Positions 2,850-63,570 of a stretch of 64,000 bases of DNA are shown here, piece after piece. The notes beneath the pieces are model-generated. The model was not told where the DNA came from. It did no database searches and was given only the letters and a program-made list of their open reading frames with translations. The DNA lies in the sequence record LC727698.1, one strand, 5' to 3'. The position numbers and the translations under genes are program-made. How positions within the stretch are numbered: the stretch's first letter is position 1; every line of letters begins with the position of its first letter.

Positions 2850-3751
2850 TGAAGGTCCGTTATTTTCATCCCATAAACAATGTATTCGAAGAAACAGTAT
2901 GGGATAAGCCCGATATAAAAAATACAGAAATTGAAGTTAAAACAAAATATGTAGGTGTTTCCAATAATGATTTAAATGTAATTTATAACCAAACACCTTA
3001 TGCTAGTAACAAATATGGTTGTGAAAGTGTAGGTATAGTAACAAAAGTTGGATCTAAAATTACTGATGTAAAAGTGGGAGATTTTGTAGCCACAACTACG
3101 AATCATTTATATTCAGATTTTTATAATTGTAAAACAGAAGAATATGTAAAAATTCCTAAATGTTCTCCTAGATATATTTTAGAACCAATTGCTCGATCAT
3201 TAAATTTAATAACACAAAATTGGAACAAATTTGTAGAGTTAAATAGAAACGAAGGTAAAATACTTATTCTAGGATCTGGTTTTGTTGCATCTGTACTGTA
3301 TACTGTCTTAACAAAAGAACACGATGTTGATCCTAATAGAATATATGTTGTTGGATCTCATAATAAATCTATCTTTAATAAATCGTTGTATAATACTCTA
3401 CCGATTCACTTGTATGACATAGTGTTTGATCTGCAGGGCATGAACACACCCTTAACAAATAATATATTGAATACGAATTCCTTATTAATAATAGGTGCCG
3501 CAGGTAAACCGACTTTAATAGATTTAAATCTATTAGCACATAAATCTGTTACAATAAATTTCCCTAGTCCCGATAATAATAAATTTTACGAATCATTAAA
3601 TGATGCATGTAGAATAGTAGAAACTAAAATCTTTGATCCTAATAAATTTTGGACTAAGGGATATAAAAGAGACACTGAATGGAAAAGTGCATTCAGTACA
3701 GGGATTAATCGCCCGAAACATTATAATTATGGTTATATTATTTGGAACTAA
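2849..3751 (+). CDS. Medium-chain dehydrogenase/reductase (Zn-ADH/GroES-like) family protein
   Basis: YGCESVGIVTKVGSKITDVKVGDFV matches the GHExxGxVxxVGxxVxxxKxGDxV pattern (His replaced by Cys); Rossmann-like ILILGSGFVA. Confidence 0.75.
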   Translation: MKVRYFHPINNVFEETVWDKPDIKNTEIEVKTKYVGVSNNDLNVIYNQTPYASNKYGCESVGIVTKVGSKITDVKVGDFVATTTNHLYSDFYNCKTEEYVKIPKCSPRYILEPIARSLNLITQNWNKFVELNRNEGKILILGSGFVASVLYTVLTKEHDVDPNRIYVVGSHNKSIFNKSLYNTLPIHLYDIVFDLQGMNTPLTNNILNTNSLLIIGAAGKPTLIDLNLLAHKSVTINFPSPDNNKFYESLNDACRIVETKIFDPNKFWTKGYKRDTEWKSAFSTGINRPKHYNYGYIIWN

Positions 3752-8227: not shown

Positions 8228-8699
8228 AACCATACAATCTCTCCGAAGAGAAATAGAATTATTAAAAGATCAAGGTCTAAAATTAAGACATATAAAAAAT
8301 CCTTGTAAAAAATGTATGGGTTACGGAATTATTTGTTATGGATCTACTGCTATGTGGAACAGAGGTGCAGTCGGAGGGAATGCAATAACACCCGGCCGGT
8401 GCGATTCTTGCTGGGGTTCTGGTGATGAAGATAACCCGTGGGAAAATTTATTAGAATTAACAATTCAAAAAAGAACAATAGATACAATCTACAACTCTCT
8501 TAAATTGGACGGTTGGATAGAAGTAACGTCCGATACTGTGTTTTTTAAAGGAAGTAACCGAGTTGTTACTAAATCTGGAAATATTTTATATGGATATAGA
8601 AGTTATTATAATGACAAACAATTAATCTGCTACATCGAAGAACCTAATACTTCAATTAATTTAAAAATAACTAGTTGTGTTTTTATACAAAAGTGTTAA
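8220..8699 (+). CDS. Protein with DnaJ-type CxxCxGxG zinc finger
   Basis: CKKCMGYG and CDSCWGSG after an N-terminal coiled coil. Confidence 0.65.
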   Translation: MNETIQSLRREIELLKDQGLKLRHIKNPCKKCMGYGIICYGSTAMWNRGAVGGNAITPGRCDSCWGSGDEDNPWENLLELTIQKRTIDTIYNSLKLDGWIEVTSDTVFFKGSNRVVTKSGNILYGYRSYYNDKQLICYIEEPNTSINLKITSCVFIQKC

Positions 8700-9111: not shown

Positions 9112-9734
9112 TATACAGTTCGCATGCAAACATATTTAGGTCTGTTGCAAATTCTCTTATTTTAGAAATTTATAAAATAAACATCTCTTTAGAAAAAATG
9201 ATAGACGATGGACACGGCGACATATTAGATAGACAAGTAGTTTGCAGGAAAGGAACTTGGTTTTCTAAAAACTATTATATAATTTCTTCTTCTGCAAAAG
9301 AATTAGTTTCTCTTTCGCCTGCATTTATAGAAATATCAAACATTACTGTATCTGCATATACTTCCGGCGCATTAAAAAATAACCCTTTATCTAAAATGAA
9401 GGGATTCGACAAATATATGCATAATGTAGGTGATGCACTAACTGCAATTAATTCGTCTAAGCTTGCAAACAAACTATTTAAATCTATAGAAGAACAAAAT
9501 ATAATTGTTGATAAAGGCAGGGAAGAATATGCGTTATCGCAAAGTTTAATAAAAGAAAATTGTCATACAAACAAAGGAATGCAATATAAACAATTAGAAG
9601 AAATAATTAATACCTATATACGTCAATTACCAGAACACTTACAACACGAAGCAAGAAACAGAATAAGAAAATCCGATAAGAAACTTAAATCTTTAATTAG
9701 TTACGCACAAGAACATAACATAACTTTTATATAG
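9108..9734 (+). CDS. Hypothetical protein
   Basis: 208-aa ORF, ATGA overlap with previous gene. Confidence 0.6.
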   Translation: MIYSSHANIFRSVANSLILEIYKINISLEKMIDDGHGDILDRQVVCRKGTWFSKNYYIISSSAKELVSLSPAFIEISNITVSAYTSGALKNNPLSKMKGFDKYMHNVGDALTAINSSKLANKLFKSIEEQNIIVDKGREEYALSQSLIKENCHTNKGMQYKQLEEIINTYIRQLPEHLQHEARNRIRKSDKKLKSLISYAQEHNITFI

Positions 9735-9744
9735 TGGAAATATA

Positions 9745-10074
9745 ATGAAAAATAGAATTAAACATATTTTGGATTTTTATAACGGATTTTCTTATATAGT
9801 CCTATCAAATGTTATATTTCTTTTTAGTTGTATAGTAACTACAGTATTCCTGTGTTATGTGTCTAAATTAAATAATATACAAAATTTAGTATCCGATACG
9901 GTTTATACAATTATAGTAGTTTTGTATTGTATTATAGGTCTTCTGTGTGGATTAAAAAGTAGTGAAATAGTAGAATTGATAAAACCGGAGAAAAATATTG
10001 CAACTACTGTAGGTGTTATAACCGGCATCACTGTAGTGTTAGTTGCTATGTTGGGATGGATATATGCGGCGTAA
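9745..10074 (+). CDS. Membrane protein (about 3 TM)
   Basis: Three hydrophobic segments. Confidence 0.6.
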   Translation: MKNRIKHILDFYNGFSYIVLSNVIFLFSCIVTTVFLCYVSKLNNIQNLVSDTVYTIIVVLYCIIGLLCGLKSSEIVELIKPEKNIATTVGVITGITVVLVAMLGWIYAA

Positions 10075-18164: not shown

Positions 18165-18499
18165 TATATGAACACTTATGATTATATAAGACAGAATAAC
18201 GACAAAATAGTTACATTTGAAACTATATTACATATAAGCAGTAGAAGTAGAGTAATAAGACTGCATTACAATTTTAGTTATATTTTACAACGAATGTCTC
18301 TAATTCTACCAGATAAACGTGGGAACCTGGTAATTAAATACTTTTATTACCGAAGTGTATGAAATATATTTCGTGTATATTATATAACTTTCTGTTCACT
18401 ACTTATATAAAAGTACATTCCAAAAATATTGTAAATATAGTATAGTTTTCATATAAAAGTATGCGTATAATTTGCACATATAACGCAATAACGCAGCAA

Positions 18500-18667: not shown

Positions 18668-18744
18668 CCCTCGGTAGCTCAGTTGGTTAGAGCGCGCGAC
18701 TCATAATCGCTAGGTCACTGGTTCGAATCCAGTTCGAGGGACCA
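18668..18744 (+). tRNA. tRNA-Ile2(CAT), lysidine-type
   Basis: Cloverleaf with encoded CCA; GCGA-CTCATAA-TCGC anticodon arm as in E. coli ileX; A73. Confidence 0.85.
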
Positions 18745-18766
18745 ATTTTAAGATGTTGTGCTTTTA

Positions 18767-18851
18767 GCCCGAGTGGTGAAATTGGTAGACACAGGAGACT
18801 TAAAATCTCCCGCTTCACAGCGTACCGGTTCGAGTCCGGTCTCGGGTACCA
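18767..18851 (+). tRNA. tRNA-Leu(TAA)
   Basis: Long variable arm, GGAGA-CTTAAAA-TCTCC, CCA. Confidence 0.95.
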
Positions 18852-18901
18852 AACAAAAGATATAAATACTTAACAAGATAGGAAACTATTCTAAAATTAA
18901 A

Positions 18902-18977
18902 TGGCTAGTAGCTCAGTTGGTAGAGCAAATGACTGTTAATCATTGGGTCGTAGGTTCGAGTCCTACCTAGCCAGCCA
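18902..18977 (+). tRNA. tRNA-Asn(GTT)
   Basis: AATGA-CTGTTAA-TCATT, G73, CCA. Confidence 0.95.
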
Positions 18978-19003
18978 ATTACACTTTGTTGTATATTCAA
19001 TAT

Positions 19004-19079
<76 letters not shown>

Positions 19080-19148
19080 ATTTTAAATAACAGTTGTATC
19101 TAAAGAGATACAATAGTCTAAATAAAATATTCATATAATGTTTCAAAC

Positions 19149-19225
19149 GGGACTTTAGCTCAGTTGGTTAGAGCGCGCGACTCATAATCGCTAGGTCACT
19201 GGTTCGAATCCAGTAAGTCCCACCA
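19149..19225 (+). tRNA. tRNA-Ile2(CAT), second copy with different acceptor stem
   Basis: D, anticodon and T arms identical to 18668-18744; acceptor GGGACTT/AAGTCCC; CCA. Confidence 0.85.
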
Positions 19226-19275
19226 ATTTTTATATACAAATCAAACTATACTTAAACTATATAATGAATGAATAT

Positions 19276-19360
19276 GCCCGGTTGGTGAAATCGGTAGACA
19301 CAGGAGACTTAAAATCTCCCGACGAAAGTCGTGCCAGTTCGAGTCTGGCACCGGGCACCA
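19276..19360 (+). tRNA. tRNA-Leu(TAA), second copy
   Basis: Same anticodon arm as 18767; different acceptor, variable and T arms; CCA. Confidence 0.95.
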
Positions 19361-19369
19361 AACTCCTAC

Positions 19370-19399
19370 AAAAGGAACATATTATAGTATGTTCCTTTT
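19370..19399 (+). terminator. Terminator after first tRNA cluster
   Basis: AAAAGGAACATA-TTATAG-TATGTTCCTTTT. Confidence 0.75.
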
Positions 19400-19586
19400 T
19401 TATTATGATATTTTTATTATGAATGAAATAATGCATATATCTGCCAACACATACGTAATAGAATATCGCGTATTAAACAAGTTAGTAGTCACTATAAAAA
19501 ATAATAGATCTTTTACATTATGGGTACATTTTGATATCGGTACATTTTCTATGGCATGGAAATACAATGCAATATAGAATTAAAAA

Positions 19587-19748
19587 ATGAAATACATTAT
19601 TAATTTACAATACTCAACAGAAGTAATATATATGCCGTGTTTCAACATAATATCGTTATGCGATAATAGATCTGTTACTATCCTTTCTATTACTATGATA
19701 TTTAAGATAAGATACTATTTGCATCCGATGTTCCGTTATATTCTATAA
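19587..19748 (+). CDS. Single-unit member of small paralog array (53 aa, below ORF-track cutoff)
   Basis: MKYIINLQYSTEVI N-terminus (hand translation). Confidence 0.4.
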   Translation: MKYIINLQYSTEVIYMPCFNIISLCDNRSVTILSITMIFKIRYYLHPMFRYIL

Positions 19749-20224
19749 TACATAATATTTTTATTGTAACAAATACCAGAAGTTCTTAGATAATATATAG
19801 CAATTCTGTTTATTATCGATATTGCGGTATACTTAGTATTTCTTATTAACCGTATTACATAGAATAAAGAATGGAAAAAATTTTAACTATTTCACATAAA
19901 ACATTAATATGTGAACTGTCGTTATTAAAATGGTCGAAATCCATAGTTTGTGCATATTCTGGCGAAATAATATGGTATGTTCGGTTGCATAAGAAATGTT
20001 ATGTAGTACAGCTAAGATGATAATGAACTGTATTTTTTCCTATTCGTACTATTTAGAACGCATCGTATGTCATGCAAAAATCTACAAAGGGTTTGTAGTC
20101 AGTAAAAATACTTTTTGTGAGAAATCCGTAATAGCTTTATACTTAATAAATAGTGGTAGTTATTTTCATAAATGTTACGTCGATCATTACTTAATTGTAT
20201 AGATATATATTTTAATAAAAATAG

Positions 20225-20253
20225 TTGACCAAACGCACAAAACAGTATATAAT
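20225..20253 (+). promoter_or_regulatory. Sigma70 promoter upstream of tRNA-Arg
   Basis: TTGACC-N17-TATAAT. Confidence 0.8.
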
Positions 20254-20304
20254 GTTACGCATACAAAGCATTATTACAAAGCTATCATTAGTTGCACAAG
20301 ATAT

Positions 20305-20381
20305 GCGCTCGTAGCTCAGCTGGATAGAGCATCCGCCTTCTAAGCGGATGGTCGGGGGTTCGAATCCCTCCGGGCGCGCCA
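20305..20381 (+). tRNA. tRNA-Arg(TCT)
   Basis: TCCGC-CTTCTAA-GCGGA, CCA. Confidence 0.95.
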
Positions 20382-20402
20382 ATTTTTAAAGAGTGTTGTG
20401 TT

Positions 20403-20636
20403 ATGCAAACAATAAGATTTGACATAAGACTTCTCGATTATAGTAAGAAACAAGGCTTTTGCTGTATAGGTAAAGATATATTCGAAGTGTGCAGAAAAAC
20501 TCGGATCAGTCCAGGACAGTTAAACTTACGAAAAGATTATATAGGACGAGTATTAGTATGGATTGATTCGAACTATAATCTGCACAATACCTGTTTAGTA
20601 GGCTGGACTCGGTATAAAAAATTTATTCATAATTAA
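20403..20636 (+). CDS. Hypothetical protein
   Basis: 77-aa ORF directly after tRNA-Arg. Confidence 0.5.
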   Translation: MQTIRFDIRLLDYSKKQGFCCIGKDIFEVCRKTRISPGQLNLRKDYIGRVLVWIDSNYNLHNTCLVGWTRYKKFIHN

Positions 20637-20640
20637 TAAT

Positions 20641-20883
20641 ATGAATAGATGCAAAGAACATCTACAATACAGAACAATCAAAAAGCATACATTAACTTGT
20701 AGGAAATGCAAAGAGTTATCGTTACAAATAAAATTATTTTGGCTTCAACAACAAGCATTCAGTATTAGAACTGATACTAGCGGAATATACATATTCGATA
20801 ATAAATATAATTCTATTTACGTATACTCTGTGGCTTGGTATAATACAGAATTATACGGTAAAGGGACAATAATTTTAGAATAA
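20641..20883 (+). CDS. Hypothetical protein
   Basis: 80-aa ORF with a CxxC. Confidence 0.4.
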   Translation: MNRCKEHLQYRTIKKHTLTCRKCKELSLQIKLFWLQQQAFSIRTDTSGIYIFDNKYNSIYVYSVAWYNTELYGKGTIILE

Positions 20884-20911
20884 ACATGTATATATAAGAG
20901 TACCTCAATTA

Positions 20912-21244
20912 ATGAATAATTATTCTAATGATACAGATATTCTAAAATGGATAAAGCGTAACAATAGAAAAAATGCACGTCTAATTTCATATATAGACGG
21001 AATATATAATATTGTTTATTTCGATGGCGGAAAAGCAAGAGTTGGCATAGTAAAAGACAATATGCACTGCAGATACGGAATACATAGTCGTGGATCTATG
21101 TATTCGAAAGATATAATGAGCCTGTGGCAATCTAGTACAGGTTCGTGTTCGCCTGATGATGTAAAGATTATGCAAGATTATCTAGACGATAAATGTATGC
21201 TTCCGGAATTTGATTTTTCTCAGATTAAAAATTTAAAATGGTAA
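20912..21244 (+). CDS. Hypothetical protein
   Basis: 110-aa ORF with normal protein-like composition. Confidence 0.6.
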   Translation: MNNYSNDTDILKWIKRNNRKNARLISYIDGIYNIVYFDGGKARVGIVKDNMHCRYGIHSRGSMYSKDIMSLWQSSTGSCSPDDVKIMQDYLDDKCMLPEFDFSQIKNLKW

Positions 21245-21267
21245 ATAATATAACAATATAGTTTTAT

Positions 21268-21344
21268 CGCAGGGTATGCAAGAGGTCTAAGCAGAAAGGC
21301 TCATAACCTTTTTATCGTGGGTTCGAATCCCACCCCTGCAACCA
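21268..21344 (+). tRNA. tRNA-fMet(CAT) (initiator-like)
   Basis: C1:A72 mismatch, CGCAGGG/CCCTGCA-A-CCA ends like bacterial fMet; anticodon stem AAAGG/CCTTT has only two of the three G-C pairs. Confidence 0.8.
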
Positions 21345-21353
21345 GTTTTATAT

Positions 21354-21430
21354 CTAGGCATAGCTCAAGTAGGTAGAGCACTTGCTTTGGGAGCAAGAGG
21401 TTGGGGATTCGAGGTCTCCTGCCTAGACCA
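21354..21430 (+). tRNA. tRNA-Pro(TGG)
   Basis: CTTGC-TTTGGGA-GCAAG, CCA. Confidence 0.9.
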
Positions 21431-21439
21431 ATTTACTAT

Positions 21440-21512
21440 GCAGTCCTAGCTCAATTGGTAGAGCACTGTCCTTCCAAGTCAGATGTTACGGGTTCGAGTC
21501 CCGTGGGCTGCT
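21440..21512 (+). tRNA. tRNA-Gly(TCC), CCA not encoded
   Basis: CTGTC-CTTCCAA-GTCAG, U73; followed by CAA. Confidence 0.9.
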
Positions 21513-22269
21513 CAATATTCTAATATAATTGATTAGTATATCTAATCGATGGTTAGTGTAGTGGATGCATATGGAAATATAGAAGTATTAGTTATGCCAT
21601 CTAACATAACGGTACTAGAATTACAGGCATATACAACAGAGCTATTGTATGTAAGAAAATCTCATTGTTTATGTTTATACCTTCCTGATATAGGAAATTA
21701 TGCTTTATGGTTTTTTTAGACAGATAGGATAAAAATATAAATTGATATTATTCTGTTTAAGGAACTAGAATTAAATGGCAGGTTGCTTATTTAGACTAGA
21801 TTTGTCTATTTTTCGTGAAAATGTATATAGTATTTCTAGTTTGTCTTATACAAAATCTATATGCATTTCAATAAAAACTAAACCGACAAGCAATAGAAAA
21901 CAATTAGAAATATATGTTGTAGATAAAACAACTGATTTTTTAGTTGCATGCAAGTATTTTTAGCTTATCTATTTTGACTTGCCTTTAAAATAAATAACCA
22001 TTATATATTTGATATAACAACTATTCTAAATAGAAATAAAACCATAAATACACATAATAACGGTGTGGATTTATGGAAAACATATTTAGGATATCTATTA
22101 ATGCTAACGAAGGTATTATACGAATATCCCCTACTTACTTTTTTAATGGTGTTTTTTATTCAAAGCATTTGAATATTTTTATAATAGATCCCGACGGATA
22201 TCTAATAAGAAAAATATATACTTGTAGTACATTCTTATGATGATTTCTTTTAAATATACAAAATAACAT

Positions 22270-22298
22270 TTGACAAAAGTATAATTATTTCGTATAAT
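22270..22298 (+). promoter_or_regulatory. Consensus sigma70 promoter
   Basis: TTGACA-N17-TATAAT upstream of ORF 22330 and the Ser tRNAs. Confidence 0.85.
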
Positions 22299-22329
22299 AA
22301 GTGTATAAAATAACAAAAGAGAATTTTAA

Positions 22330-22689
22330 ATGATTTCCAAAATTCAAATTGTATACGGAATATATCTTCCTACTGCCGATGCAAAAATTATATACGAAGA
22401 CTCAGAATACGAATCTAATAAAATAAATAAAAATATTAGATTATTTGCAAATGATGATTATTTAGAAGATAAGATTTTAGAAAATAAGGAATTCGAAGAT
22501 AATCCCTATGTTCCGCACTTTTATGGTATCTTTTGTAAAGAATTCGATAATGACCAAAGTGCATACTTATATAATGTTCCTAAATCTTTTATAGATGAAT
22601 ATAATAATGTAGCTCCAGCTATTTTAGCTAGACTCGGTTATTTATATAGAGTTGCAGGAAAACAACCTTGTAGAATAATTTACGAATAG
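22330..22689 (+). CDS. Hypothetical acidic protein
   Basis: 119-aa ORF between promoter and tRNA-Ser. Confidence 0.65.
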   Translation: MISKIQIVYGIYLPTADAKIIYEDSEYESNKINKNIRLFANDDYLEDKILENKEFEDNPYVPHFYGIFCKEFDNDQSAYLYNVPKSFIDEYNNVAPAILARLGYLYRVAGKQPCRIIYE

Positions 22690-22703
22690 AATTAACTAGT
22701 TTT

Positions 22704-22793
22704 GGAGAGGTGATAGAGTCTGGTTTATTATACTAGTCTTGAAAACTAGCGGATCGAAAGGTCCCGTGGGTTCGAATCCCACCCTCTCCGCCA
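22704..22793 (+). tRNA. tRNA-Ser(TGA)
   Basis: Long variable arm, CTAGT-CTTGAAA-ACTAG, G73, CCA. Confidence 0.95.
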
Positions 22794-22798
22794 AATAT

Positions 22799-22888
22799 AG
22801 ATACTTGACCGAGTGGCTTAAGGTGCTTCCCTGCTAAGGAAGTGAGTTTGAAAAAGCTCCGTAGGTTCGAATCCTACAGTATCTGCCA
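22799..22888 (+). tRNA. tRNA-Ser(GCT)
   Basis: Long variable arm, CTTCC-CTGCTAA-GGAAG, G73, CCA. Confidence 0.95.
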
Positions 22889-45845: not shown

Positions 45846-45874
45846 TTTACATTACATACACATATGCATATACT
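45846..45874 (+). promoter_or_regulatory. Sigma70 promoter with no ORF downstream
   Basis: TTTACA-N17-TATACT. Confidence 0.7.
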
Positions 45875-45880
45875 ATATAC

Positions 45881-46158
45881 AAGTTATGCGCTGTTGCATA
45901 CGTAAATACCTCCTATGTTGTTTAGATATGTCGATTCTGGTATAACCAGATAGACCTAAGGATGATGCTAGTGATTCCTTAGTATTGTATATTCTAGCTG
46001 AGTATAAAGAGTAAGGGGCTTTATACAAATAACAATTCCCTAGGCAAGATATACCGCTCCGTTGTGCTGACGAGCATAATTTGCCCAGATACAGAGCACG
46101 TGACTGGTCTGAGGAGCATTTATATCAGAAAGGCAGACTTATGTTTGCCTTTCTTTTT
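45881..46158 (+). ncRNA. ~280-nt sRNA candidate
   Basis: Bounded by promoter 45846-45874 and terminator AGAAAGGCAGAC-TTAT-GTTTGCCTTTCT-TTTT (46127-46158); internal hairpins; CCTCCT near the 5' end. Confidence 0.55.
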
Positions 46159-46177
46159 GAGCAGATATTCTCTTATT

Positions 46178-46261
46178 CACTTCCTTATTCATTTCTTTAT
46201 TCATCTCTATTTCGTTTGTCACTTCCTTATTCATTTCTTTATTCATCTCTATTTCATTTGT
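46178..46261. repeat. 42-bp pyrimidine-rich tandem repeat (2 copies)
   Basis: CACTTCCTTATTCATTTCTTTATTCATCTCTATTTC(G/A)TTTGT at 46178 and 46220. Confidence 0.9.
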
Positions 46262-46383
46262 TATTGCAAATAAGACTAATTCTTATTTGCGTTTGTAATT
46301 TCATTTGTTATTGCAAATAAGACTAATTCGTATTTGCATTTGCAACGAAAAAGAATATGCAAATAATAACTAATCTTATTTGC
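46251..46383. promoter_or_regulatory. Cluster of three Fur-box-like 19-bp operators (47-bp tandem duplication)
   Basis: GCA-AATAAGACT-A-ATTCTTATT-TGC at 46266-46290, a near-identical copy 47 nt later, and GCA-AATAATAAC-T-AATCTTATT-TGC at 46359-46383. Confidence 0.55.
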
Positions 46384-46762: not shown

Positions 46763-47467
46763 ATGTCCGTACATATCACTCGTCAACGTACCGACAAACA
46801 ACACGTCCTGGCACTGGCAATCAACGGTGTGGTCATCGGCCAGACTATGGCTACCTACACCACCCCGAGCAAGCGCACCTGGTCGGCGACCGCCGAAGTC
46901 GAACTGGCAGACGGCACCGTCGTACAGTTCGAGCAGAAGGAAGTGTTCAGCGCGATCCGCATTACCCGCGAAATCGAGCAGGCGCTCGACGGCAAGGAAC
47001 TGGCGGCCAAGTACACCCCGGAACCGAAAGTTCCCGGGCAGAAGGGTCCGAAACCGCTCACCGACGAAAGCCGACTCAGCAACGCGATCGCGATCGTCAA
47101 AGCGGCCATCACCCACACCGGCTTCGACGAAGCTACCCTGGTGTTCGACGGGGTCGACAAGGCCAACTTCGAGCAGAACAGCACTTCCGTCGGCAACAAG
47201 CTGCGCCGCCTGGGCTTCGTCTTCGAACTCGGCGCCGGCAAGGCGAACAGCGGCAAGGGCTTCCTGATCAACCGCAAAGCGCAGGCCGAGGCAGAAGCTG
47301 CCGAACGCAAGGCCAAGCGCGATGCCGAGAAGAAGGAACGCGAAGAAAAAGCGGCGGCTGCCAAGCGCGAAGCTGACGAACGTAAGGCCAAGCGCGAAGC
47401 CGAGCGCGCCGAAAAGGTCGCTGAAAAGAACGCAGCGATCGCCGGGGCGGCACAGGAAAGCAAGTAA
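46763..47467 (+). CDS. Early host-codon-optimised protein with A/E/K/R-rich helical C-terminal tail
   Basis: GAGG RBS, about 60% GC, tandem promoters and terminator. Confidence 0.9.
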   Translation: MSVHITRQRTDKQHVLALAINGVVIGQTMATYTTPSKRTWSATAEVELADGTVVQFEQKEVFSAIRITREIEQALDGKELAAKYTPEPKVPGQKGPKPLTDESRLSNAIAIVKAAITHTGFDEATLVFDGVDKANFEQNSTSVGNKLRRLGFVFELGAGKANSGKGFLINRKAQAEAEAAERKAKRDAEKKEREEKAAAAKREADERKAKREAERAEKVAEKNAAIAGAAQESK

Positions 47468-47482
47468 TTGCCCAACTGCGCC

Positions 47483-47509
47483 GAAAGGGGAGCAATTTGC
47501 TCCCCTTTC
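47483..47509 (+). terminator. Terminator
   Basis: GAAAGGGGAGCA-ATT-TGCTCCCCTTTC. Confidence 0.85.
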
Positions 47510-48238
47510 TTCATGACCATATAATCTATATACTACTGTGTCTTTAACTATATTTTCTATATCAGCTAGTTTGTATGCAATAACTTGGTATTCTATGCCA
47601 GCGACACAATGTTGTTATATAGACATAATAACACGCGACGCTGATATTTTTATAACCTATCCATTTTATAATAACATACTTGTATCTAAAATTATTTCTA
47701 ATACAATACCTGTAGGAAGTTATGAACACTATATTAGAGATATGTCGTGGAATAAGAAATGATTATATAACAGTCAATAATTTTACATATGACTACTATC
47801 TAGAGGTAAACACACCTGCGTTTTCTTTAATGATAATTATTCCGACAGTTCCTATATTAGACAATACTTGCATTACTTTTATAAAAAAGTATTAATATGA
47901 ATATATTCTTTATATCAAACAGTCTATCTAATATACTATATCATAAAGCTTATGATATACATATGATAGATATTAAGATTAATAATTCTGCTTCTATTTG
48001 GCTTACATATTCTTTCAATATTACTAAGGTATCATTTAAATATATTATCTAATTCATTTTCTTATTGTATGAGTTGCAATTGCAAATTACTCTTATTTGT
48101 AATTACATATAAACAATCAGTTGCTATTAAAAGTATTTGCTGTTAATATATTATATAACAGTGCAATTGATATTTTAAAATACAGTGTGCAATACATCTT
48201 ACATGTATTAAAATTTGTGTGTTACTTAGTTTGCATTA

Positions 48239-48442
48239 ATGATTAATATACCTCTCTTACAGTACAAAACTAATACTATAGACAATTTGTTCGGGCGACG
48301 GTTCTCAAAATGTATACAAGTGCGAGATGACAATCTAATTATACTTGTTAGTTTCTATATAGAAGGTTCTAAATATAGAAAATTTGTACATAACAAAGAA
48401 TACCTCGAAGGGATTTCAGCATATGCAAACAACAATCGTTAA
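48239..48442 (+). CDS. Array-like small protein
   Basis: MINIPLLQYKTNTI. Confidence 0.4.
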   Translation: MINIPLLQYKTNTIDNLFGRRFSKCIQVRDDNLIILVSFYIEGSKYRKFVHNKEYLEGISAYANNNR

Positions 48443-49175: not shown

Positions 49176-49517
49176 ATGATAGATAAAAACGGAAATACAG
49201 AAGACTTTGATTTTGATGATGCATGCACTATAACTGACCTGCCTGTTCCTCTTCAGCAAAAAATACAATCATATAAATTAAATAAAATATTGGTTATGGT
49301 TGCAATCCTTAAATATTCGAACATAAAACAAGAAATTGGATGTTTCGCTATCATATGGGATCATATAATAAAAATAACGGTTGAAGTAAAATGCAACCCG
49401 TATGCAGAAACACACATACTCATGCATGCGCATGTATTTTCTAATTCCGATTCATGTACTCATAGTGTATTGCTGAATTACAGAAACAAATATTTACCCA
49501 CTAATTATTATAATTAA
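49176..49517 (+). CDS. Hypothetical protein
   Basis: 113-aa ORF. Confidence 0.5.
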   Translation: MIDKNGNTEDFDFDDACTITDLPVPLQQKIQSYKLNKILVMVAILKYSNIKQEIGCFAIIWDHIIKITVEVKCNPYAETHILMHAHVFSNSDSCTHSVLLNYRNKYLPTNYYN

Positions 49518-49518
49518 T

Positions 49519-49923
49519 ATGGAAGATATTCTTAAAATTGCCAAACTAATCGGGTACGTAAACATACATGCAAATAAACATTTTCAGTATGGTTTTAACA
49601 AAGATATGGAACATGTATGTGTTAGTGCCAAGACTAGGACAAGTATGAACGGAATAAAATACCTTTATGTAGTAATGAATATATATTATATATATTGCCA
49701 GCAAGAAAGTGTTGCCGTTATATTAAACGAAGTAAACACTGATGAAATGCCTGTATTAGATAATCTTTATGCTAAACTTAATGATTTAGTTACACATAAA
49801 TCTATTATAAAATTTAAATATACAGAAATAACACAAGAACAAATAGATTTGTTGAATAATAGTGAAAGATATATAGTATATTTTGACTCTAATTTAGAAT
49901 ACGGAATAGCTTCGTTTTATTAA
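49519..49923 (+). CDS. Hypothetical protein
   Basis: 134-aa ORF. Confidence 0.5.
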   Translation: MEDILKIAKLIGYVNIHANKHFQYGFNKDMEHVCVSAKTRTSMNGIKYLYVVMNIYYIYCQQESVAVILNEVNTDEMPVLDNLYAKLNDLVTHKSIIKFKYTEITQEQIDLLNNSERYIVYFDSNLEYGIASFY

Positions 49924-49936
49924 TTTTGAGGAATAT

Positions 49937-50134
49937 ATGAAAAAACAAACAGGATTTACAGATTGGCCATTGATTAGTTTGGGTACAATTATTATCTTGT
50001 GTGTATGGGTATTAATTCTACAATACACAGAAATAAATGTACTAGAAGAAAAATGTAACAAAGTAGGTGGTATTTTTAATAACACCGTTTGCATACGGTC
50101 AGATGCAGTTATTAATTTAGATAAGGTAAAATAA
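49937..50134 (+). CDS. Small membrane-anchored protein
   Basis: GAGG RBS; KKQTGF N-terminus, TM helix, C-terminal Cys pair. Confidence 0.65.
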   Translation: MKKQTGFTDWPLISLGTIIILCVWVLILQYTEINVLEEKCNKVGGIFNNTVCIRSDAVINLDKVK

Positions 50135-50135
50135 A

Positions 50136-50393
50136 ATGCCAAAACTTTACGTTAACAAAAAACATGATACCATTTATCTTCAATTAGATCATTTCTCATC
50201 TAATACTGTATCTCCAATTAATTATAACGAAGATGTAGAATATGTAATTGATAGGATCCGTAGTCTGCACAAATCCAGCTTCGGATTTAGTCATATGAAT
50301 ACTCTACAAGAATATCTTACGGCAAGAACAGAACAGGATAAGAAGTTTAAGCTTAAAATAGAAGACTTTGAAGTAGTATCATTTAAGATTTAA
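50136..50393 (+). CDS. Hypothetical protein
   Basis: 85-aa ORF. Confidence 0.55.
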   Translation: MPKLYVNKKHDTIYLQLDHFSSNTVSPINYNEDVEYVIDRIRSLHKSSFGFSHMNTLQEYLTARTEQDKKFKLKIEDFEVVSFKI

Positions 50394-50414
50394 AATTATA
50401 CATAATCAAAGTAT

Positions 50415-50443
50415 TTGACATTTGATGTGTATACTAGTATAAT
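50415..50443 (+). promoter_or_regulatory. Perfect consensus sigma70 promoter
   Basis: TTGACA-N17-TATAAT followed by about 850 nt without an ORF of 60 aa or more. Confidence 0.9.
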
Positions 50444-50449
50444 TTGCTC

Positions 50450-51075
50450 ATGCTGTCGTAACAGCTACTTTGTTCCATTCACAAGCAGCTCTGTTCCATT
50501 ATTGGATATTGGTAGTAGAAACTATCCCCATCGTGCCTACAGTATTGTTCTGTTAGAGACAGATTAAAGCATACAAAAGTAGGTTATTTAAATTATGATT
50601 TTGGGTGCTGAAGTATAGTCGTTAGACAAGGATATGTCTAATGTTGCAAAGGACTATGCGAAACGTATTATATATCTTATCCGATATTAGATATGTAATA
50701 AAAGGATGAAGCTCTGGTAGAAACAGAGTGTAATTCTTGCTTGTATTTCACACGGATATACAAAAGAATATACACACCAACTTCAGCATTGATGTAAATT
50801 TTCTAGCATAGGTATATAACATCGATGTTCCGGGATTCATTGGAAACAATGAGAGAATGATGTAATCTGAGGAAAAAGGTCCCCGCCTCGTCCATATTAC
50901 GAAATGGTTTTGAGTACTTATGCCCTCGTCCTATATTGGCATATGGGTTTTATATTTCTCCCGTAATTACGGGAGAATATAATTTCCTGAACCTACTTGG
51001 AAATGGACGCTTCTGCTGTGCTTCGCACAGCATCTAAGGGCCTTCACCCTTACCGCTAAGAGCAAGAGCAAAAGC
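50450..51075 (+). ncRNA. ~600-nt large structured ncRNA candidate
   Basis: Nested long-range helices 50577-50585/50990-50998 and 50606-50614/50780-50788; GAAA tetraloop hairpin 50837-50852; several local stems. Confidence 0.6.
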
Positions 51076-51309
51076 AATATAATTACAAATAAGAATTAAT
51101 TATTGTTTAGTTTTATCGTAATGAATATGAAGATAAAAACTAAACAATAATTCACATGTAGCGTTAGCTACTGTGAATATCTACTATAGTATTAACCATA
51201 TATGTATACAAGGGCATAATATGGCTGTTACTTGTTGACAATTTGATATATGTGTTACACTGCATAAATCAAATGTACATTACAATGTTTTGATTATTAG
51301 GAACATACT

Positions 51310-51900
51310 ATGTCATTTTCTTTGACTGCTGCTATTAATCGATATACTAGTCTAATAGAAGAAAATTTTAAAATAAGTTATCTGAGGCAATTTAGGTTAG
51401 GATATATCTCGTATAAATTATTAAGAAATAAAACATTATTACATACTGAAATATCACATAGACGTGATCATGTAGCGGTAATTACTTCTTATACATATGT
51501 AGAAAATAATGTCGAATTAAATAAAAAATCATCTTTTGCACATTCATATGTTGTTACTACCGATTGCTCTAAATTTAAAGTAGGAGATATAATACAGTTT
51601 TACGAGCTAATTCCTCGTGGAAATGTTTTTGATATTGAAGAGAATACTCAAATTGGCTGGTCCACCGCCAACATTGGAATTAACGAGAATCCGTTTAATC
51701 TTCAATATATTTCGAACAATAAGTATATTCGATTAGAAACAGGAGATATATTTGTCGGTATTAATGACAGTATGGTAAATGAACTACAAGAACATATGCA
51801 TGTTCATTCTATATGTACTAACGAAACAAAGAAGTTTTATGTAAGAGAAATTGATTTAAACATGCTACATTACAAAAACACATTATGGAATAAAGAATGA
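51310..51900 (+). CDS. Hypothetical protein
   Basis: 196-aa ORF with AGGA RBS. Confidence 0.65.
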   Translation: MSFSLTAAINRYTSLIEENFKISYLRQFRLGYISYKLLRNKTLLHTEISHRRDHVAVITSYTYVENNVELNKKSSFAHSYVVTTDCSKFKVGDIIQFYELIPRGNVFDIEENTQIGWSTANIGINENPFNLQYISNNKYIRLETGDIFVGINDSMVNELQEHMHVHSICTNETKKFYVREIDLNMLHYKNTLWNKE

Positions 51901-52445
51901 ACTACAAAGCATTAGAAGTATTTTATTTCTTTCTAGAACATTACAAGGTAAATCCAGTCGCCGACTTGGAATTTAAATTCGAACCCTCGGGTAGTGATGA
52001 TCAATCTAAGCGCAAGTCATCACTGTCGTTTGTTAAACGCATTGGTGTTCTTACTCCTTCATTTAACGAATTATACGAAGTTCAGAATCGATTCATGACA
52101 GATCTTCGAGAAATGAATGTAGTATATAAGATAGGATTTAATTATAATGCATTCAACGTATTAGCACCTTTGTATGCAAGATATGAAAAGAATGTAAAAG
52201 AATTTCGTCGACTTTTAAAGAAATATTCGAGTTTCAACGAAGTAACAGAATATTACAAAAAAGCCGACAACATGTTACCGGACAATGTATACGAAACAAT
52301 GAAGGAAGATTTTTCATTGTTTAATGACGTTACTACAAAGAGGTTATCTGAAATAAAACTTTGTTATCCTAATTGGCAAGTATGGGATTCTGAACATCCT
52401 AACTGGGAAACAATAAATCAACTTTATAAGAATGCAAAGAAATAA
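51897..52445 (+). CDS. Hypothetical helical protein
   Basis: 182-aa ORF, ATGA overlap. Confidence 0.7.
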   Translation: MNYKALEVFYFFLEHYKVNPVADLEFKFEPSGSDDQSKRKSSLSFVKRIGVLTPSFNELYEVQNRFMTDLREMNVVYKIGFNYNAFNVLAPLYARYEKNVKEFRRLLKKYSSFNEVTEYYKKADNMLPDNVYETMKEDFSLFNDVTTKRLSEIKLCYPNWQVWDSEHPNWETINQLYKNAKK

Positions 52446-52454
52446 TGCATATTT

Positions 52455-52480
52455 AGAAAGGGAATTATAATTCCCTTTCT
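52455..52480. terminator. Palindromic terminator
   Basis: AGAAAGGGAATTATAATTCCCTTTCT. Confidence 0.8.
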
Positions 52481-52496
52481 TTATGGATCTATATTA

Positions 52497-52521
52497 GCAA
52501 ATGCTAATTAATCTTATTTGC
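52497..52521. promoter_or_regulatory. Fur-box-like operator
   Basis: GCA-AATGCTAAT-T-AATCTTATT-TGC. Confidence 0.5.
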
Positions 52522-52573
52522 ACAAATTTAATCCTATTGTGTTTTCTATTTTGAAGTGCTACATTACATGTAG

Positions 52574-58280: not shown

Positions 58281-58512
58281 TAAAACGGTCTACTGGCATA
58301 TGCCTTAGTGCTAGTAGGAATCATTAACCTAAAACTATTATATGCTTCCTGGAGGTGAAGAGTATGCCGCCGCAGCATTAAATATACATTATGATGATGA
58401 TAATTATGAATGCCGAAACACCGCTTCGATTCGTTTAAAAGACAAATGTCTGAATCGAATGTTTTTGGGCAAAAAGGTCCCTTAGATGGGATTTTTTTGC
58501 GGCTGCTAACTA

Positions 58513-58537
58513 GCAAACGCGAATTAATCTTATTTGC
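58513..58537. promoter_or_regulatory. Fur-box-like operator just upstream of promoter TTGACT-N17-TACATT (58557-58585)
   Basis: GCA-AACGCGAAT-T-AATCTTATT-TGC. Confidence 0.5.
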
Positions 58538-58614
58538 AATTTAAGAAAAATACCAGTTGACTGTAGCTTGTTAACATAGTACATTTAACTCATAAATCCG
58601 CAGGAGTAGCAGTT

Positions 58615-59501: not shown

Positions 59502-59705
59502 ATGAAGAAACTATCTATGTGCGATTTTGCCAAATGGAAGGCAAACTATTACAGCACTAATAAATCCGGTCAGCCACTCCGGCTAGGACAAGCATTTATT
59601 AACGAATTTTCCGAACAGGGTGATATGCCTCAGCCAAATCTATATTATGAAGAAGATAATGCAACTGCTGAGCTTATCATTCTAGAAAAATACATTATAT
59701 ACTAA
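59502..59705 (+). CDS. Hypothetical protein
   Basis: GAGG RBS; RLGQAF.N....LYYE motif common in phages (recall). Confidence 0.75.
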   Translation: MKKLSMCDFAKWKANYYSTNKSGQPLRLGQAFINEFSEQGDMPQPNLYYEEDNATAELIILEKYIIY

Positions 59706-59715
59706 GGAAGTAGTA

Positions 59716-59910
59716 ATGTATCTTGCACACCTATTCGCTTTGGTCCCGTCTATGTTTGCAGTATTAATTAATGCTATCTTTATTAAATACGGTTTGGGAC
59801 CTGCTTCTATAATAGTATTTATGGCCTTAGTTGTAACTGTAACAGGAATTGGGTCTGTAATAGATATGATGCGTGCATTGTCTGAAGTAGACAATATTAT
59901 TGATAGATAG
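59716..59910 (+). CDS. Small membrane protein (2 TM)
   Basis: AAGGA RBS; hydrophobic. Confidence 0.65.
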   Translation: MYLAHLFALVPSMFAVLINAIFIKYGLGPASIIVFMALVVTVTGIGSVIDMMRALSEVDNIIDR

Positions 59911-59935
59911 TATTTATGTATGCATAAGAGAACTT

Positions 59936-60235
59936 ATGAAACTCAACGAAGTTACTACAATTTCTGATCTAGACAATATTCCTGTCACTGACAAATTTAT
60001 AGTTGTCGGCGAAGATATGGTAGGTCTTGCTTTTATCGATAACGATGGAAAGTTAAATGATGGATTCTTTTTTGAGTGTACTTATACTCAGAATAAGGAA
60101 CAAATATTTAAAGCTGTTCAACATTTAAAAAAACAAGTAGATGAATTAAATAATTGTAATAAAGAGAAAGTTATAGCACATATCATGCGAGCTCCTGAGT
60201 TTGCATATGTTTGGGTATACTTTGAACAAAAATAA
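59936..60235 (+). CDS. Hypothetical protein
   Basis: Start set at MKLNEV. Confidence 0.6.
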   Translation: MKLNEVTTISDLDNIPVTDKFIVVGEDMVGLAFIDNDGKLNDGFFFECTYTQNKEQIFKAVQHLKKQVDELNNCNKEKVIAHIMRAPEFAYVWVYFEQK

Positions 60236-60258
60236 TAGTTCTATATTTTTTGATATAT

Positions 60259-60283
60259 GCAAACGCAAATAATTAGAATTTGC
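60259..60283. promoter_or_regulatory. Fur-box-like operator (divergent)
   Basis: GCA-AACGCAAAT-A-ATTAGAATT-TGC. Confidence 0.4.
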
Positions 60284-60517
60284 AGAACCTGTTACAAACT
60301 TTCTGTTTATATAAAATACAATCATGCTATAATAGTTTATAATAAAACTGTAAGCATATAGCACCAAAAGAACAAAGATGAAGTTCATTCTTTGTCTAAA
60401 GATTAAGTTTGCTGAGAATTTTGATAAGAAACTTCAACTGCTAGATATTATATCAATAGTGCATTTATCATGCATTGAACAGAAAAGAAGTACTCTTTTA
60501 TCTACGAGGAAAAGCAA

Positions 60518-63435: not shown

Positions 63436-63459
63436 TCTTTATCTTTTATCATTGCAAAT

Positions 63460-63570
63460 ACAAATAATAATTATTCTTATTTGCATTTAGTGATGTAAAT
63501 AATTCTTATTTGTATTTGCGATTAATTCTTATTTGCTACAATAGATAGAATAAGAATAATTCACATTTGC
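63460..63570. promoter_or_regulatory. Cluster of four Fur-box-like operators
   Basis: AATAATAAT-T-ATTCTTATT (63463-81), GATGTAAAT-A-ATTCTTATT (63492-510), TTTGCGATT-A-ATTCTTATT (63515-33), AATAAGAAT-A-ATTCACATT (63549-67). Confidence 0.55.

Follow-up and report, generated by a model that had tools for sequence, protein, structure and literature searches.

A gene-free interval in phage 30-3

What, if anything, is encoded in the 916-nt gap between annotated genes near the right end of the Pseudomonas phage 30-3 genome? The stretch of DNA analysed here (64,000 nt, hereafter the window) makes up the final 64 kb of the 30-3 record (LC727698), a PA5oct-like jumbo phage of Wroclawvirus with a genome of 284.5 kb and a GC content of 31.6%, and the gap occupies positions 50394-51309 of it. 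A first-pass annotation had proposed a new or divergent large non-coding RNA (ncRNA) at 50415-51075. The evidence described below indicates that positions 50450-50985 of the plus strand probably do encode a real and new large structured ncRNA, termed RNA A, which belongs to a family with a folded core of ~125 nt. The proposal is borne out by the abundance of the region in RNA-seq assemblies, the lack of a conserved open reading frame (ORF), the lack of an Rfam match and the existence of a covarying five-member family (A-E); its end coordinate of 51075 requires correction, as the RNA probably ends near 50912-50985.

The features on which that annotation relied are all in the DNA as described, namely the perfect TTGACA-N17-TATAAT promoter (Table 1), the hairpins with GAAA and AGGATA loops, and the exact 9-bp complements AAGTAGGTT/AACCTACTT (50577/50990), TGCTGAAGT/ACTTCAGCA (50606/50780) and TTCTCCCGT/ACGGGAGAA (50956/50969). 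Perfect inverted 9-mer pairs number three, where dinucleotide shuffles give 1.24 ± 1.48 (P = 0.15), and the long-range pairs number two against 0.80 (P = 0.19). The minimum free energy (MFE) z-score is -5.0 on the plus strand and -4.9 on the minus strand, and random 300-nt windows of the genome average -1.1 (standard deviation 1.6), with 13% below -3; fold energy was rejected as evidence because the two strands hardly differ and scores vary widely across the genome. As both the 9-bp helices and the fold energy lie within chance, the case must rest on comparative and RNA-seq evidence.

Paralogues and distant homologues

The trail to a second copy began at a loose end in the RNA-seq contigs of RNA A. 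Paralogue B is an unannotated element of ~965 nt at 30-3 positions 47,411-48,411, in a 1.5-kb gene-free gap adjoining a RusA-like resolvase gene, and comes with a perfect TTGACA-N17-TATAAT promoter of its own as well as a canonical terminator. A and B have identical blocks of 38 and 30 nt in common, and blocks of 30-38 nt are longer than the word used in assembly, which accounts for the break of every assembly at window position 50508. Paralogue C (30-3 positions 217,754-218,384, in a 1.87-kb gap) corresponds to the PA5oct element 'ncRNA004' (EST35_0353, a putative long ncRNA of 619 nt), a true homologue with the common core, block III, the same promoter type and a terminal GC-rich hairpin. 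Its length was set by RNA-seq, in which it made up 0.02-0.08% of phage reads, and no structure, family or related loci were given for it in that study, where neither A nor B was annotated (Lood et al. 2020, PMC7318152). It differs from RNA A in that it is a separate locus 2.7 kb to the left of the window and in that A is very abundant in some runs.

Searches of the whole 30-3 genome by BLAST, nhmmer and a covariance model returned exactly three copies, all on the plus strand, with nhmmer E-values of 1.5e-51 for A and 1e-49 and 2e-43 for the other two; the covariance model found no fourth copy. Two further members, D and E, come from uncultured-phage contigs that encode resolvase homologues at 70% and 64% identity and keep the gene-free gap alongside; the core profile matches these gaps on the expected strand (nhmmer E = 3e-6 and 3e-10). 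The covariance model, which was built from A-C alone, gives 162.6, 156 and 135 bits for A, B and C and 62 and 60 bits for D and E, and it detected no member beside resolvase homologues of 50-53% identity (L039-L043). All five members have a promoter of the form TTGACA-N17 followed by TATAAT (A and B), TAAACT (C), TATACT (D) or TATAGT (E). Exact scans for the invariant blocks in IMG/VR, JGI metagenomes and GTDB genomes gave only chance matches within coding DNA (L017-L020, L034), IMG/VR held no relatives of the proteins flanking RNA A, and no description of the A-E family was found in the literature searched. A-E thus likely constitute a previously unrecognised family of large structured phage ncRNAs with at least five diverged members.

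Within Wroclawvirus, the 1.1 kb around RNA A is 100% identical to Pseudomonas phage sp. 30-3 LC727698 (270,844-271,944) and 98-99% identical in ten further records, including PA5oct, MIJ3, Callisto, Paride, Ettore, Deifobo, Cassandra, PAC2 and 30-2; a blastn search of 50,697 phage records matched the RNA A stretch to 11 Wroclawvirus records and to no others. The PA5oct counterpart lies at 12.8-13.7 kb, within the 39-kb terminal repeat.

The conserved core

The family resemblance is concentrated in a four-way junction near the 5' end of the RNA (Table 1), in which two near-invariant blocks pair with each other (CCCA/UGGG, UCGU/AUGA) and helix Ha extends this inter-block stem into a variable tip formed by Hc and Hb. 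As MAFFT over whole paralogues was unreliable beyond the core, anchored coordinates and a model-based alignment were used instead. In the A-C alignment, 98.6% of cells are paired and ten pairs are changed on both sides, against 0-2 in controls in which the pairing was slid along the sequence, and in the five members 163 of 170 cells are paired with 13 compensatory pairs. The model-based alignment (eight sequences from five lineages) has 97.5% of cells paired and compensatory change in 17 of 37 pairs, against 0-3 in slid controls, which supports the core helices; its covariation of 0.389 compares with 0.151 ± 0.021 in shuffles (none of 500 reaching it), and slid controls do not exceed 0.059.

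H1, H2 and the inter-block stem are invariant in A-C and changed on both sides in D and E, where H1 reads GAUG/CAUC and UCUG/CAGA, one G-U pair in H2 is replaced by U-A and CACG/CGUG stands in place of CCCA/UGGG. As these helices do not vary among the sequences from which the fold was derived, D and E serve as a genuine out-of-sample test, by which the helices are confirmed. P1 is known in four complementary versions across the members, and positions 50538 and 50581 in Ha co-vary among strains from U-A to C-G. The comparison also disposes of the outer long-range helix (50577/50990) of the first-pass annotation: its 5' arm is the 3' strand of Ha and pairs locally, with covariation, to 50536-50540, there is no counterpart in B or C, and its 3' arm lies past the terminator-like hairpin.

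Table 1. Features of the RNA A locus in window coordinates.
Feature	Position	Strand	Basis or remark
Sigma-70 promoter TTGACA-N17-TATAAT	50415..50443	+	12/12 consensus match
RNA A, probable non-coding transcript	50450..50985	+	most abundant part ~50450-50912; likely primary 3' end after hairpin 50956-50977
5'-terminal hairpin GCUGU-CGUA-ACAGC	50452..50465	+	sequence, MFE fold; copy A only
Core, four-way junction, ~125 nt	50485..50611	+	RNAalifold on A-C, then pair counts in five members
P1, core closing helix	50485-89/50607-11	+	RNAalifold on A-C
Core hairpin H1	50495-98/50503-06	+	RNAalifold on A-C
Core hairpin H2	50511-16/50521-26	+	RNAalifold on A-C
Inter-block stem	50527-34 with 50595-98 and 50602-05	+	pairing of two near-invariant blocks
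Ha	50535-40/50579-84	+	extends inter-block stem
Hc	50542-45/50571-74	+	variable tip
Hb	50550-53/50559-62	+	variable tip
P2, long-range helix TGCTGAAGT/ACTTCAGCA	50606..50614 / 50780..50788	+	10 bp in A
Hairpin P2a, UUAGACA-AGGAUA-UGUCUAA	50622..50641	+	GGA in loop; paralogue comparison
Block III, AAAGGAUG-AA-GCUCUG-GUAGAAA-CAGAGU	50701..50729	+	motif and hairpin; all five members, 84-93% identity
Hairpin UUCUU..UUGUAU-loop-AUACAA..AAGAA	50734..50768	+	loop holds 4 of 12 strain-variable sites
Copy A-specific hairpin	50788..50826	+	separates P2 3' arm from block IV; B lacks it, P2 there abutting block IV
Block IV, GUUCCGGGA	50827..50835	+	identical in B; variants AUUCCGGCA (C), GUUCCAGGU (D), GGUUCCGAC (E)
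Hairpin UCAUUG-GAAA-CAAUGA	50837..50852	+	GNRA-type tetraloop; invariant in 12 genomes; not alignable in paralogues
3' motif UGAGG...CCCCGCCUC	50868..50890	+	counterparts in B, C, E; found by eye, weaker support
Small hairpin CCAU-loop-AUGG, then UUUU	50892..50911	+	candidate 3' end of abundant species; coincides with depth drop
GC-rich hairpin UUCUCCCGU-AAUU-ACGGGAGAA	50956..50985	+	strong, terminator-like, weak U-rich tail; terminator scan
AACCTACTT, 3' arm of rejected outer helix	50990..50998	+	judged outside the structure; beyond terminator-like hairpin
Separate hairpin GCUGUGC-UUC-GCACAGC	51015..51031	+	downstream of RNA A
Long AT-rich hairpin	51098..51152	+	3' of RNA A; self-BLAST

Transcription and ends of RNA A

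The promoter is the sole TTGACA-N17-TATAAT site in a 4-kb scan and one of 11 across both strands of the genome, and from this consensus RNA A is transcribed by the host sigma-70 RNA polymerase. Its start is predicted from the spacing at A50450, seven bases past the -10 element, and the plus strand is assigned from the promoter together with the plus-strand annotation of paralogue C, whose limits were defined by RNA-seq. Four runs from one 2020 study (X1-X4) contain the region; the evidence consists of assembled contigs placed on 49400-52400, and depth is given as the assembler's word depth, which is rough.

In run X3 the depth in five 100-nt bins spanning 50410-50914 is 94,000, 447,000, 91,000, 100,000 and 175,000, compared with 1,244 upstream, 7,475 in 50915-51015 and 1,368 further downstream, so that the depth over ~50,450-50,914 is 70-350 times that of the flanks. 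In X2 it reaches 75,000 against 1,019, and in X1 and X4 the excess over the flanks is just 3-10-fold. The rise falls in bin 50410-50510, which fits a start near 50450, and the depth falls from bin 50814-50914 to bin 50915-51015, in keeping with an end at the small hairpin and UUUU of 50892-50911. Some read-through to the strong hairpin at 50956-50977 would also fit the depth, giving RNA A a length of ~465-535 nt. B, C and D terminate at analogous GC-rich hairpins, and the RNA-seq-defined end of C lies just past its hairpin.

Sequence conservation and coding potential

Among 12 genomes and contigs, RNA A has 12 variable sites in 466 nt (50450-50915), with none in 50797-50954 and four in a single hairpin loop (50747, 50750, 50752 and 50755), compared with 24 per 440 nt in the upstream genes and ~50 over the initial 270 nt of the downstream gene. 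In two Logan contigs the downstream protein is 82-83% identical and RNA A is ~99% identical. Judged by these counts, RNA A is under purifying selection and is far better conserved than the neighbouring genes. Paralogue B has eight variable sites in 966 nt, with none in 484 consecutive nt, where adjacent coding DNA has 14 in ~525 nt.

An alternative reading is an mRNA for a small protein or a long 5' leader of the downstream gene, and to this extent the tiny ORFs annotated in some GenBank records and an AUG in block II would speak for translation. As the first-pass annotation stated, no ORF of 60 aa or more is present; the longest in the gap spans 50 aa from a TTG within the promoter, and the records of PA5oct, 30-3, 30-2, MIJ3 and Callisto have no coding sequence (CDS) in 50394-51309. 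The remaining records carry four or five tiny ORFs over RNA A, of 30-55 codons, on both strands and differing by record, none of which is kept in B or C and which overlap covarying helices; in B, moreover, the frame that is annotated over A as a 50-aa ORF is interrupted by a stop. A search for a conserved ORF in A, B and C found none: their sole common AUG, that of block II, opens frames of 7, 50 and 14 codons and is not preceded by a Shine-Dalgarno sequence in any of the three. Substitutions in the stems are compensatory rather than synonymous, and the downstream gene has its own promoter-like site (51235-51261) past the terminator-like hairpins. An mRNA or leader is therefore hardly tenable. 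The tiny CDSs over RNA A (50415-50567, 50677-50849, 50803-50895 and 50967-51077) are found in the Ettore, Cassandra, Paride, Deifobo and PAC2 records, and analogous ones are annotated over paralogue B in PA5oct and others; those over A and B are probably spurious.

Elements outside the core

Around the common elements the peripheral hairpins differ greatly in size among the members. The inner long-range helix of the first-pass annotation (50606/50780, here P2) withstood comparison, since analogues of 6-7 bp with compensatory changes are present in B, C and E. Its 5' arm overlaps the 3' arm of P1 through a common GCUG segment, making the two pairings mutually exclusive, and constrained folds give -142.4 kcal/mol for the P1 state and -140.5 kcal/mol for the P2 state. 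As P1 and P2 compete for one segment and both covary, a switch of the core between two conformations is possible but unproven. Further downstream, B has a UUGUA/UACAA stem with ACGGAUAU that matches the hairpin at 50734-50768.

Hairpin P2a also persists with compensatory changes: its stem is wholly different in A, B, C and D (six of seven pairs compensatory between A and B), and the GGA of its loop is retained in all four. The resemblance to a CsrA/RsmA site that had been noted for it is not backed by motif density. A sponge for a GGA-binding regulator (RsmA/RsmN, of the CsrA family) would titrate the host regulator and reprogram translation, and besides the retained P2a loop, an AAGGAUG in block III of all five members and a GGAU[A/G] count of four in A, in B and in C, where 1.4 would be expected (P ~0.05 each, marginal), would suit such a role. 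GGA itself is not enriched, with 9, 13 and 10 occurrences in A, B and C against 6.9, 11.1 and 7.7 expected (P = 0.2-0.3). RsmY, RsmZ and CsrB carry GGA about once per 16-17 nt; in A, B and C the density is about one per 55-75 nt. RNA A resembles CsrB, RsmY and RsmZ as an abundant ncRNA with GGA in a hairpin loop, of which a single one is kept in four of five members. It differs from them in its background GGA density, in having no Rfam match to the Csr/Rsm families and in its large invariant junction core, which such sponges do not have. As E is without the GGA loop and the site of strongest constraint would be left unexplained, a sponge is considered very unlikely.

Several observations weigh against the interpretation of RNA A as a structured ncRNA of a new family. 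The family holds just five independent lineages, and the A, B and C loci have no neighbouring protein family in common and no Pfam hits. For P2 and the 3' motif, which lie outside the core, the counterparts were matched by eye, and D offers no convincing P2. The fold stability of A and C is just moderately above the genome background, and that of most of B is not above it at all. As for expression, the RNA-seq contigs carry no strand information and report word depth, the blocks common to B and C inflate the RNA A bins over 50484-50612, the excess is modest in two of the four runs, and the locus is not among the four RNA-seq-defined ncRNAs of PA5oct (Lood et al., PMC7318152).

Comparison with known large RNAs

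Rfam contains models for GOLLD and ROOL, which are likewise large (0.5-1 kb), multi-helix, phage-associated and highly expressed RNAs of unknown function. An Rfam scan of the whole window at the gathering score, and of A, B and C at E-values up to 10, returned only tRNAs and noise, and neither model was hit by A, B or C. GOLLD and ROOL often adjoin tRNA genes in phage or prophage DNA and RNA A does not, the tRNA cluster being ~28 kb away; moreover, the hosts differ, RNA A belonging to a jumbo phage of Pseudomonas, and there are three diverged paralogues per genome. A relationship to GOLLD or ROOL was rejected for want of sequence or structure homology, and group I and II introns and other known ribozymes were likewise rejected, there being no Rfam hit and the flanking genes being complete and separate.

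Likeness in assembly can also be considered, as GOLLD, ROOL and OLE form homo-oligomers (PMC12286853). RNA A could accordingly be part of a self-assembling, RNA-only particle in which the core mediates homo- or hetero-oligomerisation of A, B and C; the size class, phage origin and abundance are similar, and a core common to three paralogues could permit mixed assemblies. The absence of a GOLLD or ROOL model match and the distance from the tRNA cluster speak against this. The palindrome AUUUAAAU, in an unpaired part of the core, was rejected as a dimerisation driver because it is not conserved in D or E. Such a particle is regarded as highly improbable.

Possible modes of action

An invariant junction core surrounded by freely varying peripheral helices is typical of RNAs with partner-bound cores or tertiary active centres, and on this analogy a trans-acting binding scaffold is favoured, albeit tentatively. 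In this mechanism the A-E family would act in trans, the sequence-invariant core would offer a docking site to one common partner, be it a protein of phage or host or a second RNA, and the variable periphery would give stability and copy-specific properties. In a comparison with E. coli genomes, which stood in for conserved stable RNAs (Pseudomonas was not searched), no long stretch complementary to the core was found. A further proposal, held to be rather unlikely, envisages a new RNA machine (a ribozyme, or an RNA-protein or RNA-only assembly hub) with the invariant four-way junction as its active centre; made in three size variants, it would be needed for host takeover, could be tied to replication in dormant cells (Paride) and would use P1/P2 as a built-in switch.

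The main rival to the scaffold is that the RNAs are origin-of-replication transcripts, structured pre-primers in the style of ColE1 RNA II or the T4 origin transcripts that would be made from strong early promoters, form R-loops and prime DNA synthesis, with three copies marking three origins. Like those transcripts, RNA A is a structured ncRNA of ~0.5 kb with a strong promoter in gene-free DNA. Two of the loci, B and C, coincide with divergent strand switches at local minima of the cumulative GC skew, B, D and E lie among recombination or replication genes (RusA-like resolvase, SbcCD-like nuclease), AT-rich DNA with a long hairpin follows each locus, and the phage encodes an RNase H-like protein. 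ColE1 RNA II is also ~550 nt and needs a defined fold, so the covariation is compatible with this alternative as well. On the other side, A lies away from a strand switch, and GC skew was rejected as a test of origins since it merely tracks gene orientation here. The RNAs end at terminator-like hairpins, A accumulates to at least 100-fold over neighbouring mRNAs, unlike a transient primer, and it is the compact junction domain near the 5' end, not a 3' transition from RNA to DNA, that is most strongly conserved. An origin transcript is thus decidedly unlikely, and the scaffold remains the preferred reading of the family.

Neighbouring elements and genes

The hairpin at 51015-51031, downstream of RNA A, shows the compensatory change C51016A with G51030T (C-G to A-U) in Deifobo and the X1/X2 strain, single-sided G51030T intermediates in two other strains and a hypervariable 3-nt loop (TTC, TTT, AAA or GAA); either a small element in its own right or a terminator is conceivable. 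In B and C, a long hairpin follows the terminator at a distance of ~100-170 nt (L015 ~3405-3470 and L032 ~18420-18480), and the two have the identical apex AUGAGUUGUAGUUUACGAAAACGAAU, which occurs twice in the genome, on different stems. The long AT-rich hairpin of RNA A is a different one at the same relative position. The 1.1 kb past C (L032 17630-19494 = 30-3 217,630-219,494) is extremely AT-rich and gene-free, with several repeats and a terminator-like hairpin at ~18739-18760 (L032).

The 196-aa gene directly after RNA A (51310-51900) has no Pfam domain and is hypervariable among close strains, as the count given above for its first 270 nt indicates, and may be under diversifying selection. 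Elsewhere in the window, a hairpin-like motif TGCAAAT...(A/T-rich)...ATTTGCA recurs at 46251-46344, 52476-52522, 58492-58538, 60238-60284 and 63439-63526; its word TTATTTGCA occurs 18 times on the plus strand and 16 times on the minus strand of the genome, and the motif probably has a phage-specific role in regulation or termination. A GC-rich 75-nt direct repeat (47285-47404) lies inside a gene, where it codes for Ala/Glu/Lys/Arg-rich repeats, and corresponds by offset to a PA5oct gene annotated as a structural protein (9167-9871). Its GC content is conspicuous against the 31.6% of the genome.

Coordinate offset also places PA5oct ncRNA001 and ncRNA002 (PA5oct 8263-8498 and 21951-22401) at window positions ~45847-46082 and ~59535-59985, the former adjoining tandem repeats at 46166-46344. 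Both are highly expressed, with 2-5% of phage reads (Lood et al. 2020, PMC7318152), and by BLAST, nhmmer and the covariance model they are unrelated to the A/B/C family. The window also contains 12 tRNA genes on the plus strand (18668-22885), matching the 12 tRNAs reported for PA5oct.

Implications for PA5oct-like phages

One paralogue is already known, having been flagged as a long ncRNA (ncRNA004) in 2020; the window locus, the family, its distribution and its fold are new. ncRNA004 is accordingly no orphan, and the annotation of these phages can be corrected in this respect as well as for the tiny ORFs over A and B; the identical 30-38-nt blocks also account for the breaks of short-read assemblies at these loci. 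The family fold, supported by covariation and present in no database, is a target for RNA structural biology from 125 to ~1,000 nt. PA5oct-like phages, among them Paride, which kills P. aeruginosa in the dormant state, serve as models of jumbo phages and are candidate therapeutic phages in which most genes are of unknown function. RNA A, among the phage's most abundant transcripts, is now placed in a conserved RNA family with three copies per genome, and these three loci, which can be deleted and complemented, offer a handle on the biology of the phage.

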